Below are positions 41,136-53,100 of a DNA stretch of 64,000 bases, piece after piece. Numbering within the stretch: the stretch's first letter is position 1; each line of letters opens with the position of its first letter. The stretch is from Ophelia neglecta (taxonomy: Eukaryota). Under the pieces are notes generated by a model. That model was not told where the DNA came from. It saw nothing but the letters and a program-made list of their open reading frames with translations, and did not search any database. The position numbers and the translations under genes are program-made. Location: positions 107,756,001-107,820,000 of the forward strand of contig OZ260661.1 in assembly GCA_965285935.1 (NCBI GenBank). The letters run 5' to 3'.

Positions 41136-44100
41136 ATGGAAGGAGATGCGGAGAAAATGCCATTGTTGCAGAGCATGTCAAAGAATGAAGAGAAGCAGGC
41201 AGCGGCAGGGGCTGGATCCAGCGAGGACCCCGCCACCATAGCCCGTCCCGAAGGTATAACCACTACCCAGGATATATCGGCAGTCATAACTGGTATACTC
41301 TACTCAACTTTAGCACTACCTTTATTATCACGGCTATCTATTCATTGATTTTGACATTTGGACCGAAGGTGTTATTGACAAATATGCCTTTGTATCATAG
41401 TAGGCCTGTTAGGCACATATTTTTTGGTAGGCTATACTACTCACATAAGTACAAATTCTATGTATACTATATACACACAAATTTATGCTGTTTGCCTATT
41501 CCCACAAATGAAAACTATTGTCGCAGTGTAGAGAAATCACTTTAGATCCTACATTAGTTTACTTCCATGGTTTAAAATAGTTGTCAGCCAAAACGTTGTT
41601 TGTGCCACATTGGCATGGATACTTGCCAGACAAGGTATTATCACTTATCACGTAAAATCTCATTAAGTCAGTCCAATATCTTCAGGAAACTAAGTTTGGT
41701 TTCGAATCGAACCGTTTCAGATCCAAAACCAAGCGAGGCGCCTGTGTCCAAGCGGGCTTTTATTGCAGTAGTCTTGGTAACTCTGATAGTCGGTGTGGGC
41801 GTAGGAATTTCGATAGGATATTTCGCCCTAACACCATCCGCACAGGAGAAGTTAATGGAGAAACTGACGGCGGATGCCAACCCAAGTATACAGCAGAAAT
41901 TACTGAACACTATATATTCTAAAAACATACGTGATTACCTCAAGTACGTGAGTTTTTTTTATGTCGTCCAAAGCTCAATTATTAGTGTAGTGTTCCGTCT
42001 TGTTTCGGGTCAGACAGATCTTTTTGAACCCCAAAATGTACATTTTCTCGGGCGTGATATGGAGTGACTTTCTATTAGGCCTAATCACATAATGAATAGG
42101 TTGTTTATTTCATTCATTCTTTAATTACGTGGGTGTCATTTACATACAGGTTCTTTAGAAGAACTGCTGCGAGGGCCCCGATATCAATTTCTCATTGATG
42201 AAAAGACCAAATTAAATAAAGGCATTTTTTTTTCATTAATTTTTGTATTGAATTGGAAAAATAAAAATAACTTGGAACAACATTTGTTTAAGCAGCTCGC
42301 CCACAACTCGCCATTCGTTATCTATTTTCACATGTATATCACGCAGGAAACTGACTGAGCACCCACACCTAGCCGGGACCCCAGCCGACAAGCAGCAAGC
42401 CGAAAAACTAGGTCAGTTCTGGGACGCCCTGGGTCTGAGAACGGAAGTGGTACCCTATCACGTGCTGCTGTCCTACCCGGACAAGGACAACCCTAACCGA
42501 ATAGAGCTACAGGACAGCTCAGGGGCCGTAGTTTACACCACCCAACTTGTAGAGAAAATCGTCCGACCGGAACAGAACCAGTCAGACGTGGTGCCGCCAT
42601 TTATCGCATATTCAGCACCTGGCACTCCTAAAGTTATTATTCTAATTTACAATTTTGACCAGTTTTAACGACATCATCTTGATGTCTTATACGGACGTGA
42701 TTAAATATAGGCCTACTCCATTACACTTGTTTTCTTTATGCATCGCTGATCAAAGTATCTAATAGACATATTAAACTTATTTAGTACAGGTTAACTCGTT
42801 CCAATCGTCAACTTCGGTCTTAGAACCACATTTTGTATATCGTTCATAAGTTTATTCATATAGGGCGATTTAATCTATGTGAACTATGGCACCATTGAAG
42901 ACTTCATGTGGCTGAGCGAGGAGCAGGGTGTGGATTTCAGTGATACAATTTGTATTGCCAGATATGGCCGTATTTTCAGAGGGGACAAGGTAACTTCCTT
43001 CCTAATTGGTTAGAAATATAGTTAATAAACACCAAGAATTTGTAAAATCGGACTGAAGGGTCCGGATGTGAAATAGCATAAAAAGTTCGATGCACAATAC
43101 AAAGAGACTCGCCCAATACCCAAAATATTGAAGCGATAACACGGCAGCAAAATTATAATCGGTGATCAGGGGACGCATTTAAAAATAGCAAGGGGCGGAT
43201 ATATTTTTCGAATAACACTTTCGAAAAAGTTGAAAAAACATAGGTCCGCCTTGTTTCCACGTTTGTTGCATCAACTTTTGTTTTTTTTGTAAAAGAAATG
43301 CTTGTTTATTCTCCCTAGAAATTTTCTAGCCAGCGACTCTTCATTTAAGACCCCATAAGCCGATAGGTAACCGTACATCCGATTGTATATCACACCGAAA
43401 ACTTCTGCTCGGTTGGCTGCCCCCCCCACCCCCCCCCCCCCCGTCCCGCGTGTTGTGGAAGAGAACACAGCGACATCTAAAGTTCTCTAATGTGGAACTG
43501 CCACTCAGGGTTGTGAAATTCATGTCCCTGCGGAAATGGATAATGTAGTCCCTAACTAAAGGAACCATGGAAAATTATCATTACCATGGTAACCGGACTA
43601 TTTTGAGGGCACTATTTCTGTTATTATATAGGAATCTACTAGCTATACTTAACAAACGATTATTTTATGATGAAGAATGTTTTCGCAAATTTAAGCATTT
43701 TGAACCTCTTGAACATTAAAAAGCAGTTACATTTCTGCCAACTGAGGTTCATTGTACAAATAAGATCCATATTAATGAATATATTTAGCAAACAGTTGGC
43801 TGCAGACGTTTATTCGCTGTGTCACTTTTTAGGCGAAGAACGCTGAGCTTTACAATGCCACCGGCCTGATATTGTACACCGACCCACGTGATTACGCCCC
43901 GGCGGGGTTGAGCGAGGTGTACCCAGAGAGTTGGCAATTACCCGGCACCGGGGTTCAGCGAGGCTCGATCTTCTTGATTGATTGAATTGATTGAATTGAG
44001 TTTATTTGGTGCTACATAGACATCACATCAACATGTACAAACTAGCAATACATTGGTAACGAAACAAAGTAACACCAGGACGCCAGTAATAGCCGAGGCC

Positions 44101-47100
44101 GTGAGGACTGGACGCCCTATGACATTTATACATATATACAGGGGAAAAATGAACATGACATTCAAAATGATTGATATTATTATGAACAGATTTACAATAA
44201 AACAGCTATATCTTAAATAAATCAGCAGAAACAAAGATCTGTGAAAATGAAGGCAACACTGGACGTCATAGTGTATTGTCAAATATGATTATACTTAGTT
44301 AACGATGACCGTAAAATTCAACATACGAAGATAAATCACGATGGAGCAAACATTGTGTAATCATAATCTGTCAACGACAAAAGGCAAATAATATCAATAG
44401 TAATATGGTAGCTAATTAGATACTCCTAAATTACGCAGGAAATAAACAGTAATCAACATACTGTTACAATCGGTGGCACAAAACGCATGCAAATTATCAA
44501 AATAAAAAACATCCATTGAGCATCTTATAAGCAGTTCTAAGTTAAGCAGTAATAAACTGTTACGATGCGCTGCATCACGTGACATGGCATAAATTTTAAA
44601 TTATTGTGCACTTTGTAAACTATTACTTTTGACATTGTCGTGACTGTACTTCACCCACTGAGCATGTTGTCAGTCAACAAACACAGTCACCGATCGCCTG
44701 AACCAGTTGTCAGACCCTGACTGTCGTGACTGTACTTCACTCACTGAGCCTGTTGTCAGTCAACAAAGACAGTCACCGATCGCCTGAACCAGTTGTCAGA
44801 CTCAATGTCTACATGATTATCATAATGCATGTCTGCAGAGTATCTCTTACGATGTTACGATGCGTTGCATCACGTGACATGGCATTAATTACATATCATT
44901 GTGCACCATGTAAGCTATTACTTTGACATTGTCATGACAGAACTTCACTCACTGAGCCTGTTGTCAGTCAGCAAAGACAGTCACCGATCGTCTGAACCAG
45001 TTGTCAGACTCAATGTCTACAATATTTATCATAATACACGTCTGTAGAATACCAAGCTCAACATGAATTGAGAATACAACAAACAGTTGTGAATTAAGCA
45101 GGAATAACCTATTAAATTCGTTGAATATTAGGCAAAATTTTTATGGAGAGTGGTGGTTCTGTGACATGCATAACAATTGGACATATAACATTTATCGTTA
45201 TACTGTTCAAGAAGAGCCTTTTTAAGTTCAGTTTTGTTTTTGTTGCACCACTTCTTAGCAGTGATGAAACTATTCACAAGGTGTATTTTATAGGAAATAC
45301 ACTGTCGCAGAACATTCGTTCTCATGTTTGGCAATTCAATACCAGTTCTGTTCCTAGTGTTATACCTGTGAGAAGTCGCATTGGTCACTAGACGCTGGAC
45401 AATAAACCTGGGGCAGTCACCAACCAAGGCCTTATTGTACAGGGAAACACACTGTTTTATAAACAAGTCTTCAAGTTTAAGGATGCGAAGTCTTTTAAAA
45501 ATAGGGTCGGTATGAGAAATGAAATGTTCCTTATCGATAATACGCATGGACCTCTTTTGCAAAGACGATAATCGGTTTGTGTTAGATGAATAGTCATTGT
45601 GCCACACCAGAAGGCCATATGTAAGGTGTGGTTGAATCAAGGCAGAATAAATAATTTTTAGAACATCACCAGGGAGCTGGAATTTGAGTCGATTTAGAAT
45701 ACCGTTAAGTTGAGCAAGCTTTTTGCATTTAATATCTGTATTTGTTTGCCAATTTAGGTGCTGGTCAAACCAAATACCAAGAAATTTATAGTGTTGAACT
45801 TGTTCAAGTATATTGCCGTCCAATTCAACCGTCAATGTGCGATGATAGGTGGGTAGCGCTTTTTGAGGATTGCGAAAAATTATATATTTAGTTTTCTTTA
45901 TGTTGAGGGATAATTTATTAGCTTTCAACCATTCGTGCACCGCGTCAATTCCTATGTTCATGTCGTAGTATAAATCAATTAGGTCTCTGTTTGTAAATGT
46001 GAGGCTTGTGTCATCAGCAAATAGAATATCTTTTGAGGTGTTTGAGGCTTCGCATAGGTCGTTCACATATAATAGGAACAATAACGGTCCAAGAATGGAT
46101 CCTTGTGGTACACCACAATTTATAGCCATCAATCGTGAGGAGTGTCCATTGTATGTTACGAATTGCTTACGACAAGACAGGTAGCTTTCTATTAATTTTA
46201 AACACTTTCCTCTAATACCGTAGTACTGTAGCTTATATAGAAGAGTTGAATGGTCAAGCGTGTCGAACGCCTTAGATAAGTCTATGAAAATTGTTGAGAC
46301 TAAGGCCTTATTGTCGAGGCCTTTGGCTATGTGGTCAAGTAGTTCCAGAGCGGCGTGCTCTGTGGAATGCTTAGAACGAAAGCCATATTGGGAGGCGTAA
46401 ATTATTTTATATTTTTCTAGGAATTGAACAAGTCTATTATACAGAAGTCTTTCGAAAACTTTTGATATCGAAGGTAGCAGAGATATTGGGCGGTAATTTG
46501 TGAATTTAGAATGGTCTTCATTTTTAAAGATAGGTATCACTTTGGCAACTTTTGCAGAGTTCGGAAATATTCCCATTCTTATCATGGAGTTGAAAATCTT
46601 GACAAGGACATGTCCTATAGGATTAATGGTCATTTTCAGTAGTTTAGGAGTGATGTTGTCAGCACCACAGCTAGATTTAGGTTTCATTTTATCGACAATT
46701 TTTAGAATTTCTGTAAAATTGGTATCCCGAATAAATATGCTATTTGTAGAAGGCTTCTTGAGGTAAGAGCTAAAGCTACGCGTAGGAGTTATTTGTTCAG
46801 ATAGAGATGAGCCTACATTAGCGAAGAAAATATTAAAATTGTTCACTATTTCTACTGGGTCGGTTAATTTTTTATTATTTCGGTCGTAAAATATAGTTTG
46901 TATATTCTTCGAATTATTTTTATTTAGGACGACTCTAATGTTGTCCCATGTTCGTTTAATGTCATTTCTGGTGTTCTGAAAACGTTGATGCCAGTGCGAC
47001 TCTTTGGCTAACTTTATCACCTTATTCAATAAAGATCTATAAGCCAAATATTTCCTGTCAAGTTGCTCAAAGCCAGGAAGATGTTTACTCTTAGCACGTT

Positions 47101-50100
47101 TTCTACCGAGGAAGTCCCGATTTTGTGTCGATTTGAGTATACCTAGAGTAACCCAGGGGTGAATTTTGTGCTTATATTTATTAAAGCGTACTTGTACTTC
47201 GGGTATTATTTCATCTAGTGTGGCATTATATTTGTCTATGAATAGATCATATGCCTTGTCCGGATCATTATCAGCAACACAAACAACATCATCCCATATT
47301 AATGAAGACAGAGCCTGTTTAAACTGTGCAATGTTCTGATCAGTTAGTTTCCTGTACTTTACATAGTTGGGTGATGTAGTCTCTTTCGGCTTCATTTCAT
47401 ACATAAAGAGAAAATTCGGGAAGTGATCTGAGATTTGGGTGGTAAGGGTACCAGTCGTGAAGGAGAGTAAGGGGTGATGTTTTAGAAATATATGATCAAT
47501 GAGAGTTGCTGAAGATGTAGTAACTCTGGTGGGCAATGTGATCAATGGAATATAACTGTTGCTGATGAACATGTCTAGATAGTCATTAGTTTCATTGTGC
47601 AATGAGACCTTGAGAAAATCTACATTCATATCCCCACATATAACACAGTGCTTACCCTCTCCCTCAATTTGACAGATCCGCTGTTCAATAATTTTAGTAA
47701 GATCATGAATATTGCGTTTACTTGGCGACCTATAGACAGTACCAATTATGATATTGTGATTGGACGCGGCGCCGGAAGATATTTCAACAAATTCTTGGAT
47801 GACCCCACCTCGCCAGGCTACCCAGATATAGGTATTGCAAAATTACACTGGCGCCTTGAGTCGACCGTTCTGTAGATAGTGCTTAATACAGTAAGGCCAT
47901 TGATAAACATTGAATGTATTATTGAGCCGATCAAGATAAAAAGGTTGCTGTATTACTACTGATTTCGGGAAAACTAACTGCTAGACCGCAAAGTTCTTTT
48001 TAATTTTCTTAATATTGTCCCTTTGCATTTTTCTTTGACATGTAATGAAACAGATGGAGACATTTGTGACAGTTTTACCTGGGTGACCAAATTCTGTTAG
48101 TGACTATATCTTGTCCGACAAAAAATTGCACCCGTTCCTTTTCCACAGTTTCATTTTAACAGGCTCCAGAAAACTATTATGTTTACAACAAAGGTCCCTA
48201 CAAATACCAGGAGGACGGGTAACATGAAATGTTTGCAAATTGTCCTTGCCATTCTACAGATTTCATTAGAATGCCTCTCGAGCAGTTATAGATTAACGTT
48301 TTGATTATACCACCTATCTATCACCCGAACAGAGAGTGCTCATTGGATAAAGGAAGAAGATTCTGGTCTACCCAGAATTCCGGTACACCCAATCGGATAT
48401 GACGACGCCTATCATCTGCTCAGGTTATCCCTTACATACAAACAAATGGCTAAGGTATTTCATGTTTGTGTTATTGTTTATCTTTCCAACTATTTTATTA
48501 TTAAGTTAATCAAATTCCCTCTGTTTTTTCTCTCTAGTCGTATTGGTGGACAGAATGCCCCTGATGATTGGCAGGGAGATCTTAACTTTACTTATAAACT
48601 GGGTCCAGGCTTTACTGAACCAAACTGGTAAGTTCTGGCGAATGATCAGCCATGAAGTTGGAAACACTAAATTAATATCCCTTAAATGACTTTATACTTA
48701 TTCATAGAAGGGAATTTAAGACTGAAGTGCAGTACCAATCATTTGTTTTGTAGGAAGGTTCAGATGCACATATCAACGAGTAACAGAAATGCCACCATCT
48801 ATAACACTTTCGGTTTCATTAAGGGAAATGTAGAGCCAGGTGAGAAAGAGCCAGAAGGTGCCTATACATCCACTACCATTGAGGGATGGCAGTTTATAAG
48901 GGCCCGGTCACTAATTGTCAGGAGGTGGTGGTGGTTCGGGGTAAAAAATTTGCACAATTGAATTTCCACTTATAACCCCCCACCCTAAAGTATGTGAATA
49001 AATTTGATGACCTCCCTCATGATTGAAAAAGAAACTGATAAACCTCCCTATCGAAAATCAAAATTACTATTACTGACTGATATCGAATATTGACACCCGC
49101 CTTTTGGGGGACACTGGGGGGGTGGGGGGGGGGGGGATTCAGTTATATCAACTTGAGCTTTAAAATCAGAAAAAGGGAAATTCAAGAGTGCCATTGAATC
49201 AAATATTTTGGACCCTTTGCTTATGATTTCCTATATATGGTCATTATAGTGCATTTGATATGTCCATCTTGCATCATTAGCCATTAAGAGGCAAAGGTAG
49301 ACTCAATTCAGTTTTATATTGGAATCAGACCAATGTCAATTTAATATCACCAATAGGCTCCTTGTACATGCATATGACTTCCTATCAGTTGTAAATATTT
49401 TGCACCGTTGTGCCGTTTCTAGACGGGTAGGTATTCGGTATTGGTAAATTGACCTTGAACAAAAGGTCAAATTTAATATCAACTCTATATTCCTAATTTG
49501 ATTTTTTAATGAGGTCAAGGTCAAAATAAAATGGCGTCAAATACCTCTATAATGATTTCTTATTAGTGAACAATGAATTCGATACACCTATCTTACACTG
49601 TTCAGGATCTAGACTCGCAATAAAAACATTAATCGTCTCGATTGACTTTGAAAATGAGACTCATAGTCATATTCAAGATCATCACTGGATTCCTTGAATG
49701 TGATTTCCTATTAGTGTTCAATACGTTTGACCTGCATATCTTGCATCGTTAAGACATGAGAGGGCATTGCAGATTAACTTTTATGTTCGGAAATATGTTA
49801 ACATTGTCATTACATCAAAGTTGGTCAAACGTTACGCTTTGTACAACTTTTGTACAGGGTTTGCTGAGAAATTGCAATTGTAGGCCTATTGATGAATGGT
49901 TATCGGACAACATGATTTAACGAGCTCAGCTTAGCTTTTCACCCCCCCCCCCCCCCCCCCCGAAATTACCCTCCGCCTCCGTCTGATAATTAGTAATCGG
50001 CTCCTCAATGTAATGTAAACTTAAATGTGTTCAAAGATATCTGAAGAAGGGATACCATCAGAAGAAATTATAGAGGCGCATATTTGTTTTCTTTTTCAAC

Positions 50101-53100
50101 ACAGACCGATATGTATTGTTGGGAAACCATCGAGATGCCTGGGTGTTCGGAGCAGTCGATCCCACAAGTGGCACAGCAGTTATGATGGAACTATCCAGGG
50201 CAATGGCCGAACTGGTTAAAGAAGGTCACTCATCAATATGACTTTTTTTTAAAACATATTACACTGGCGTGTTTCTAACTTTCCTCTAGCGGCTTACTTG
50301 ATTTCACGCATGCACACTCCTGTCATTTTTCACACAGGTTGGCAACCCCGTAGAACTATAGTTTTCTGTAGCTGGGGGGCAGAGGAATTTGGTATAATAG
50401 GGTCCAGAGAGTGGGTCGAGGTATGACACATACATCTTGATACGCCATGCTCATAAAATACTAACCAACTATGTACCATTTTCTAAAGAAGTAGAGTTAT
50501 TGGAGCTATAACCCAGGGTTTTTTCTGGTAGATCCGACAAATGGGATTGTGGTTACGATAAACAGTTTTTATAAATATAATTTGCAGCATGTTGGTCAGC
50601 TCCTCGGAGATCGGGCAGTGGCTTATTTAAATGTGGATACTGCTGTAAATGGTAAATCGTCCATGCATCCGCGTACACAAAATAATGTGTTAAAAGCAAT
50701 TTACCTTCTCTGGCTTTTTGCACGCAACGTACCCATATTGATTTCGAAAGAAACGGATGTAAATCCACCCTTAACAGACTTTATTCTTGACTAGGAACGA
50801 CTTAAATAATATCCACCTAGAATGACCTATAAAATAAATATAATTGTCCTTCGTATATGAATGCTTCTTTAATTCTGGTTTTGGAACTTCCTAAAGGTAA
50901 TCACACTTTCCAAGGCAGAGGTCTTCCAATGATGTTTGATCTGATGTTTGATGTCGCAAAAACGGTAAGTATAGTACCACAGGCCTCCCTCTATAGCAAC
51001 GCAACATCCTACTGCCTTATCGTATAGTTACAGATGTGCAATGAAAACTTACTAAATGAAATAAAATGAGTTTTGGTGGTATATATATTCAATTGTGTGG
51101 AATATACAAAGGTTTTATTTGGTAAATCTGTCATACCAAGGTTCCCAATCCTAACGGGGAAGAGATTGCCAATGGTAGGCCGACTATGTATGATACCTGG
51201 TTGGCCGAACTCCCGGAGACGGGCCCTTCTGGTCCTACTGGCAGGCCATGGTAAGTTTACAATCCAGAAACATATATGATAAGTTCTTAAGGCCTATTAA
51301 AACAGAAAAAATCATACCTATTGAAATATTTTGTGCTTAGGTCGACTCCAATGAAGATCAGATTCAGACACATAACCAAAAATTTCTATTAATATTGAAA
51401 TAATAACATAACACAATTAACCAAATAGTTTAGTTCTTAAAAACAGTTTCAAAATCTCAATTATTATTGTAGTTAGGCGACCCCTTGCTAAATCATTTAA
51501 CAGAGATTATAAATAGTAATTTACAGAAATATTGTTAGAACTCCAGTTTGTTGCTATTATTGCCTTTGCGTAATTTCAACAGTTATGCTCTTCGGTCTCG
51601 CACAAAACCACAATCGAACAGATAATTATCATAACCAAAGCAGCGATAGGTTAACATGCTTTAACACGACGGGCAATATTGATTCTTGTAGTTATACCGG
51701 AACATAATTTAGTCACGTGTAAATTTATATTGCAATTTTGACTATGATGACGACTTTTATCAATATACCTATATGTTACACGCAATTTCCCGATCTGCGC
51801 GATCTTAGAATTGCGCAGCACAAAGTACCGATCGCCACTTCGCGCGGCAATCTTAAGATCGCGCCCTCGTCCTAACACTGCGCAGCGCAATCATCCGAAT
51901 GATCACGGAAGCTCCATAGTACAATTAGGCCCTTTTGGGGTCGATATGGTTGATAACTCCAACACCCTCCTGTCTGTGCCCGGGAATAGAGCTGCTGGCA
52001 GATTGACCCTTAGAAATTTGCTGGTCCCAGAGTCACTACTTGTCTGAAACACAAGGAACATTGTAGCAAGGTAAACAACTACACCAGTGCACTGGTGATT
52101 AATCTCAAAGTTATTACACACAAACTTGGATTTAATTTATCTAAACCTAGCACTGCACAATCTTCAGATTGCCCTGCACAATCCTAAGATAACCCGGCAC
52201 AGTCATTAAATTATCAGAACTATTAAATGCTATGTAGCATTAAGAGGGCCCGAAGTAACTTTCAATTATCAAAACTTTGCCTTTATTTAAAACTATATCG
52301 TACTAAACTACATTCGTGATTGTTCATCAAGTCACGCGTTTATTGTTTTCACACCTGTTAGCAGCGACCGGCCCCGTTTTTAGATAGTCATCAAATGGCG
52401 CGTTTGGTTTTTTTCTACACTTGTTTAATTGTTTACATCGCCGAAGCACGGTCCATCACCGACAACTTCCATCGAAAAGCCAATGGCAACCAAAGGTAGG
52501 CGTGGCTTATATCTACATCTTATTAGGGTGTTACGACGATACTACAATGTAGTCTAGATATATCCTACGATTTAGTAAGGATTGCTGAAGACCGCTTACT
52601 TGCGATTAAAGGGGCGATTTCATTGAACAAGCATATTATTTTTAAAACGGGAAATATTAGGCTACAACAGCGAAGTTATGGTGAGAAGCAGGGTTGATTG
52701 GACATTTCATGTCGATCAGAAGATTGCGCAGATAGTTAAATTGCGCAGTGCGATCTTTAGATTGCCGCGCCAAGTTAGGATCCGTCCTTTGAGCTGCACA
52801 ATCTTAAGATCGCGCGGATCGGTAGATAGCGCGTAACATATATATAAACACATTATCTAGTGGTAATTTCATTTCTACATGAGCAACTGCACGCCTACAA
52901 ATGGCTTATATGAGCATGAATCCGAAGGAGGGGTGCTGAGGTGGGACATAATTATGTTAGTGTATATTATGCTGATAATTATCAACCTACACTGCTATCA
53001 CATAAAGTAACTATCAATATGCAATACAAAATAGTTTTCAACAGTGTGTCAAATTTCCGCCGCGAACGACGTCAAAACTTTCGCTTGTAATGTAATGGGA

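Follow-up and report, generated by a model that had tools for sequence, protein, structure and literature searches.

The locus described here raises the question of whether a conserved peptidase gene has been broken by a mobile element that landed in one of its exons and, if so, whether the broken allele is new. It lies in a stretch of 64,000 nucleotides from Ophelia neglecta (contig OZ260661.1 of assembly GCA_965285935.1, positions 107,756,001 to 107,820,000 of the forward strand), hereafter the window, whose positions are counted from its first letter. In the window, a gene for a GCPII/NAALADase-like peptidase of family M28B carries a non-LTR retrotransposon (a long interspersed nuclear element, or LINE) within its fourth coding exon, in antisense orientation. 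We put the probability at about 0.85 that this is a real, recent and still segregating LINE insertion that has produced a probable null allele. An original prediction had proposed such an event, and its claims are taken up below with the results that bear on them. The interrupted exon and the insert are made up as follows.

43833..43976, + strand: left part of interrupted exon 4, 48 codons (AKNAELYN...GVQRGSIFL), with AG immediately before it
43971..43976, + strand: left copy of the TTCTTG target-site duplication; these 6 letters fit both sides at the joint of the empty allele
43977..47791, - strand: 5'-truncated LINE of 3815 bp, antisense to the gene, with RVT_1 and only the C-terminal part of Exo_endo_phos
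43977..45127, - strand: LINE 3' untranslated region (UTR) of about 1.15 kb with internal repeats, AATAAA and then a short TCAAT/TCAA-type tandem-repeat tail abutting the target site
43983..43985, + strand: premature stop (TGA) in frame with the gene, reached after two codons of insert sequence
45128..47791, - strand: open remnant of the second LINE open reading frame (ORF2), 887 codons plus stop, beginning mid-endonuclease at the truncation point
47792..47797, + strand: right copy of the TTCTTG target-site duplication
47798..47831, + strand: right part of exon 4, 11 residues plus 1 nt, with the donor GT at 47832

The consequences for the reading frame follow directly from this anatomy. Past 43976 the gene-strand frame reads ATT (I) and GAT (D) and then stops at the TGA of 43983-43985; when the insert and one copy of TTCTTG are removed, exon 4 is 178 nt long and in frame. 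The original prediction of a split exon with TTCTTG on both sides was right in all its coordinates, as it was in stating that excision of the element with one copy of the repeat restores the frame. Because the exon is 178 nt long, skipping it would cause a frameshift, and here too the predicted length was confirmed. Exon 4 belongs to the apical domain (its alignment to the 750-residue human GCPII chain covers residues 215-258), so the stop lies upstream of the whole catalytic domain. Those ligand and catalytic positions that we checked sit at 50105-50420 and 53416-53593, in agreement with the claim that the stop precedes all zinc ligands. In our model of 17 coding exons, the predicted product of the filled allele (the one with the insert) has 297 amino acids, of which 295 are native. 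The earlier counts of 18 exons, with the fifth one hit and a product of about 314 amino acids, differ from ours (17, the fourth, 297), probably on account of the uncertain start of the gene.

Evidence on whether the insertion is fixed comes from three public runs (X1, X2 and X3), all from one sample and one study, whose Logan contigs we compared with positions 43300-48400; the assembly was probably made from them, and they are hence not independent of it. An empty-site joint, 43970>47792, occurs in an X2 contig (1622 nt, depth 21) and in an X3 contig (1766 nt, depth 13). It skips 3821 bp, that is, the 3815 bp of the insert plus the 6 bp of one duplicate copy. Six letters fit either side of the joint, and with 24 more on the left they make 30 letters of shared flank, which is the overlap expected of a 31-mer graph (k=31 is our assumption and is stated by no output). 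Since a 6-bp repeat cannot make such a join in a graph of that kind, reads with the empty junction must exist if k is as assumed. Over 47792-48400 the empty-joint contigs of X2 and X3 show two differences from the reference in 609 bases, intron included (47912 G>A and 48310 C>T), and with so few differences they are allelic and do not derive from the tandem paralogue, which is 81% identical. The filled left junction is present in an X1 contig covering 43429-44003, which goes 27 nt into the element with zero mismatches. An X1 contig of the right flank has the reference alleles at 47912 and 48310 and ends at 47792, and the loose ends behind 47791 lead into the 5' part of longer LINE copies. With an empty joint in X2 and X3 and a filled junction in X1, both alleles therefore exist: the insertion is not fixed, and the ancestral empty allele persists in the sequenced sample. 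The earlier surmise that the allele is probably polymorphic, to be checked at the empty site, is thus upheld by the exact empty junction in contigs of two runs. The simplest reading is that one individual is heterozygous, with a filled haplotype G/C and an empty haplotype A/T at the two single-nucleotide polymorphisms (SNPs), and that the assembler kept the filled one. No second haplotig with an empty site was found in the assembly, where this locus and the 81%-identical paralogue are the only matches to the flanks.

The same contigs gave a few observations of another kind. Contig depth at 43300-43470 is 100-700, compared with about 25 in the adjoining intron, and because of this depth we regard that intron stretch as a repeat. 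The joint 43441>48105, seen in one X2 contig (side 21), starts in the high-depth bin and is suspected to be a repeat artefact. Inside the element, the joint 44485>45407 suggests a deletion variant among LINE copies.

The insert has the features of an APE-type LINE: a reverse transcriptase in ORF2 with an endonuclease N-terminal of it, a target-site duplication, no long terminal repeats, and a 3' tail at one junction with a 5' truncation at the other. On the ORF2 remnant, Pfam RVT_1 matches residues 432-676 (E=1.6e-32), and the Exo_endo_phos profile is matched over positions 139-225 of 225 only, compared with 31-225 in a longer copy. The 762-Mb genome holds at least 78 matching pieces of the insert, the best two being 99.0% and 98.8% identical over its whole length. 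These two extend past the truncation point and show 98.9% identity to each other over 5498 bp, which gives a family length of about 5.5 kb. The window copy is without the first ~1675 bp, comprising the 5' UTR, ORF1 and the initial 155 codons of ORF2; other copies are 5'-truncated at different points. One of the long copies encodes an ORF1 product of 295 amino acids (a coiled coil and a Baculo_FP_2nd-type domain) and an ORF2 product of 1042 amino acids with endonuclease and reverse transcriptase, and in the second the ORF1 is broken in two pieces. In a comparison of 3831 columns with ten sampled relatives, 15 differences (0.39%) are private to the insert, a value that ranks with the lowest of the set. 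By these comparisons it is a young copy from a recently active LINE family.

The antisense orientation and the ORF2 free of stops, both part of the original prediction, are confirmed by the 887 open codons and the RVT_1 match, and the search that it proposed for near-identical copies of an active family returned the 98.8-99.0% relatives. Its implication that the element is whole did not hold, as the element is truncated in the endonuclease domain and ~1675 bp short. Being 5'-truncated, the insert is unable to move by itself, and the idea that this particular copy is active is unsupported. The closest database proteins to the LINE are unnamed and 42-47% identical over most of the query. Its 3' UTR contains internal repeats of 80-120 bp whose number varies by copy, as does the length of the terminal TCAA/TCAAT tail, and a long copy on C3 has an extra ~970-bp 5' fragment of the same family 2.8 kb upstream.

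Whether such an insertion matters depends on the state of the gene that received it. The gene is laid out as follows.

41615..55632, + strand: GCPII/NAALADase-like M28B peptidase gene, 17 coding exons, 2367 nt in total (0 mod 3)
Coding exons 1-4, + strand: 41615-41943; 42347-42632; 42864-42989; 43833-43976 with 47798-47831
Coding exons 5-9, + strand: 48333-48423; 48538-48627; 48754-48839; 50105-50224; 50338-50420
Coding exons 10-13, + strand: 50588-50651; 50897-50964; 51141-51250; 53416-53593
Coding exons 14-17, + strand: 54687-54858; 54951-55032; 55139-55231; 55422-55632
50105..50420, + strand: exons 8 and 9, with the His and Asp zinc ligands and the Glu-Glu pair (WGAEEFG)
53416..53593, + strand: exon 13, with the last His ligand
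55232..55233, + strand: GC in place of GT at the exon 16 donor (CAG/GCATGT); the paralogue has GT there

We placed the exons by tblastn of full-length homologues, which had been found with exon 13, and by their collinear order in the paralogue; each exon was checked for phase, openness and splice dinucleotides, and Pfam and structure searches were run on single exons. At the 5' end of the model, both the choice of start codon (ATG 41615) and the presence of a further exon upstream are uncertain. The 16 coding exons other than exon 4 are open and consistent in phase, and their splice sites are AG/GT save for the exon 16 donor. The earlier statement that the other exons are intact, with catalytic residues in place, therefore holds with two corrections, namely that the model has 16 other exons and that one donor is GC and not GT. 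That donor may belong to a normal GC-AG intron or may be a weakened splice site.

The domain order is PA, Peptidase_M28 and TFR_dimer, as in M28B peptidases. Exon 4 matches PA with E=0.0015, which is below the Pfam cut-off; Peptidase_M28 is matched by exon 8 with 20.5 bits, just under the cut-off of 21.3, and by exon 9 with 24.9 bits, above it; and TFR_dimer is matched by exons 16 and 17 with 33.2 and 43.8 bits (cut-off 27.1). Most of the short exons gave no Pfam match when searched singly. The closest solved structures are human NAALADL1 (4twe), GCPIII (3fec) and GCPII (9hlw). Against the 750-residue chain 9hlw_A, the His and Asp ligands of exons 8 and 9 align to positions 377 and 387, the Glu-Glu of WGAEEFG to 424/425 and the His of PLYHTVYET to 553. 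In human GCPII numbering we take His377, Asp387, Glu425 and His553 to be co-catalytic zinc ligands, Glu424 to be the catalytic residue and Asp453 to be the fifth ligand. The 21-residue exon 10, which holds the Asp453 region, had no match among solved structures when searched alone; its motif AVAYLNVD is the same in the paralogue, and an amphioxus NAALAD2-like protein matches across the exon in tblastn. A hydrophobic run of 25 residues in exon 1 may serve as an N-terminal anchor, the start codon being uncertain. In the protein search, named peptidase relatives came from annelids, molluscs, amphioxus and a hemichordate.

A tandem paralogue offers a second view of both the exon and the selection on the gene.

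60472..60799, + strand: first coding exon of the tandem paralogue; the remainder lies beyond the window end, at window-equivalent 66429-79590

Exons 2-17 have equal lengths in the hit gene and the paralogue, and in the latter every exon is open and all splice sites are AG/GT. Its match to exon 4 is uninterrupted and of the same length (GSLFLDDPISPGYPDI, read as ...GVQRGSLFLDDPISPGYPDI). The original prediction had also allowed for a small target-site deletion on the grounds of a short repaired junction. That possibility is ruled out by the paralogue exon of equal length together with the empty contig, which skips exactly the insert and one duplicate copy, so that both show the exact junction. 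The short loop after GVQRG is a feature of the lineage and not damage. For exons 2-17 of the two genes, counted exon by exon over whole codons only (split codons and exon 1 excluded), dS is 0.74, dN 0.066 and dN/dS 0.09, the comparison that the original prediction had proposed. Strong purifying selection has acted on both gene lineages for almost the whole period since the duplication. With the ~99% identical relatives, the empty site, the open exons and this ratio, the earlier picture of a very young allele, in a gene that is otherwise intact and has a paralogue next to it, is sustained.

The paralogue has features of its own. Beyond the window end it contains three tandem versions of exon 4 (contig positions 107824113-107824305, 107827710-107827893 and 107829469-107829646) of 193, 184 and 178 nt, all open, bounded by AG...GT and of a length that is 1 mod 3. 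The main difference between them is in the loop after GVQRG (…TTKPSSGGLGDPLTPGYPAL, …TLALGLGDPLTPGYPAT and …SLFLDDPISPGYPDI), and from their sequences the trio looks like a mutually exclusive exon cluster in the apical domain. The hit gene has the 178-nt type only, and the LINE struck the same exon that the paralogue keeps in three versions. Identity between the two genes is uneven, at 95% in exon 2, 89-90% in exons 16-17 and 70-83% in the middle exons; the exon 2 match (94%) extends into flanking non-coding sequence. This unevenness is suggestive of gene conversion towards the ends of both genes. Scattered remains of a third peptidase copy lie beyond the window at ~107841680-107843867 of the contig; the pieces correspond to residues 262-295, 541-592 and 658-707 in a full-length homologue and are probably a decayed partial duplicate. 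A further peptidase gene, 55% identical, lies on the same chromosome 61 Mb off (46079381).

These observations are consistent with a simple course of events. The source would have been a member of a recently active LINE family of ~5.5 kb, with ORF1 and an endonuclease-reverse transcriptase ORF2, and target-primed reverse transcription would have carried it into exon 4 of a working gene for a putative type-II membrane zinc peptidase. The anatomy of the junctions points to a nick of the + strand after TTCTTG, with the TTG end pairing with CAA of the TCAA-type RNA tail of the element. Reverse transcription would then have aborted in the endonuclease-coding region, leaving a copy of 3815 bp, and a second nick with a 6-bp stagger would account for the TTCTTG duplication. 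The mRNA of the filled allele would be degraded, or its protein truncated.

The filled allele is most likely null, as judged from its predicted transcript. The alternative is that it is not, either because cryptic in-frame splicing removes the insert or because a working protein is made nonetheless, so that the insertion is nearly neutral. Exon skipping or cryptic sites can indeed give a partial rescue of exonic transposon insertions, as in mouse cases (PMC6466679). Here, however, the ends of the insert are not GT...AG on the gene strand, which contains no GTAAGT/GTGAGT donor and no polypyrimidine-AG acceptor but does contain 12 AATAAA/ATTAAA polyadenylation signals. Moreover, skipping of the 178-nt exon shifts the frame, and no alternative version of exon 4 was found in the hit gene, where tblastn with all three paralogue versions matches only 43833-43976 and 47792-47830. 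Without strong splice motifs or an alternative exon 4, and with skipping out of frame, truncated or decayed transcripts are expected, and we consider a functional filled allele very unlikely.

A second alternative, which we hold to be slightly less probable still, is that the gene was already dying, through the exon 16 donor or an unseen regulatory or 5' defect, and that the LINE landed in a pseudogene with relaxed constraint. In its favour, the exon 16 donor is GC where the paralogue has GT, the gene start is uncertain, and the family includes an intact tandem paralogue as well as a more distant third gene. Yet all exons are open over 2367 nt, dN/dS is 0.09 and the catalytic residues are intact. 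GC-AG introns are a normal minority class, and CAG/GCATGT departs from the donor consensus at +2 and +4 only.

The least probable account, a misplacement of the LINE into the exon by the assembler while the true genome has the empty site only, can point to the empty junction in the reads, to the right junction that no listed contig bridges, and to runs that are probably the assembly's own data with no second haplotig for comparison, but a misjoin would not yield a perfect 6-bp duplication with the tail abutting one copy and a clean truncation at the other, the X1 contig enters the element from unique flank and matches all 27 nt that it covers there, and the SNPs at 47912 and 48310 part two haplotypes, the reference alleles being on the X1 contig ending at the junction and the alternatives alongside the empty joint.

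A recent, segregating and probably inactivating LINE insertion is thus our preferred explanation, and several points weigh against it. The material is a single sample from a single study, which yields no allele frequency and may have been pooled. It consists of contigs and not of raw reads; at the empty joint the short side offers no more than 24 unambiguous letters, at the filled left junction a contig reaches 27 letters across, which is under the 31-letter rule, and the right junction is bridged by no listed contig. The 5' end of the gene model is uncertain. The exon 16 GC donor could be a second, older defect, though its context is a good match to GC donors. Finally, the loss of function of the filled allele is deduced from its predicted coding capacity.

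If a recent and segregating insertion is accepted, a wider interpretation can be offered, tentatively and at somewhat less than even odds. The reference individual would be heterozygous for a new knockout of one of two tandem GCPII-like genes, and we would be seeing how the loss of a paralogue begins in a wild invertebrate, the pair of genes being one in which exon duplication is diversifying the apical-domain loop. Were this true, the individual would represent a natural carrier for testing dosage and buffering between the two genes. For the genome at large, the locus indicates that this LINE family has been active very recently and that it may still yield loss-of-function alleles in conserved genes. 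It also provides a ready polymerase chain reaction marker and a putative natural knockout of a GCPII-like peptidase in an invertebrate. Since the reference haplotype is the broken allele, automatic annotation will probably call the gene a pseudogene or a split gene, despite the intact allele.

How does this insertion compare with known systems? Knockouts by exonic LINEs are classic, and we see here textbook insertional mutagenesis with no new mechanism. A mutation-causing L1 insertion lies in exon 14 of the human F8 gene. In a review of the mouse germ line, most new L1 inserts were 5'-truncated and 6 of 12 mutagenic L1 cases were exonic, and the Nr2e3 rd7 allele is due to a full-length antisense L1 in exon 5 (PMC6466679). 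The insertion in the window resembles these exonic L1 mutations in being an endonuclease-type LINE with signs of target-primed reverse transcription, a target-site duplication and the usual 5' truncation, and in disrupting coding sequence to give a segregating, presumed loss-of-function allele. It differs from them in that the element is of another family, with an ORF1 coiled coil and FP-like domain, a short tandem-repeat tail in place of poly(A), and a duplication of 6 bp, and in that its host is an invertebrate and it was met as a heterozygous state in a reference assembly, known from sequence alone, and not by way of a mutant. In its features the element resembles LINEs of the CR1/L2 type, which have short tandem repeats in place of poly(A) at the 3' end; it shares with them two ORFs, an APE endonuclease and reverse transcriptase, frequent 5' truncation and a short-repeat tail that varies by copy.

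The interrupted gene, for its part, resembles human GCPII (FOLH1/PSMA), GCPIII (NAALAD2) and NAALADL1 in its domain order, in the HRD..D, AEEFG and YH motifs at aligned positions and in a putative hydrophobic N-terminal anchor. Identity to the human M28B structures is ~50-70% on the exons with a match, and a peptidase role is predicted from this similarity. Unlike in human GCPII, the loop after GVQRG is ~5 residues shorter, as it is in one of the exon versions of the paralogue. What sets this case apart, beside these familiar parts, is its invertebrate host, its LINE family, which is unnamed and has database relatives at most 47% identical over most of the query, and the presence of a broken reference allele and an intact allele in one sample.

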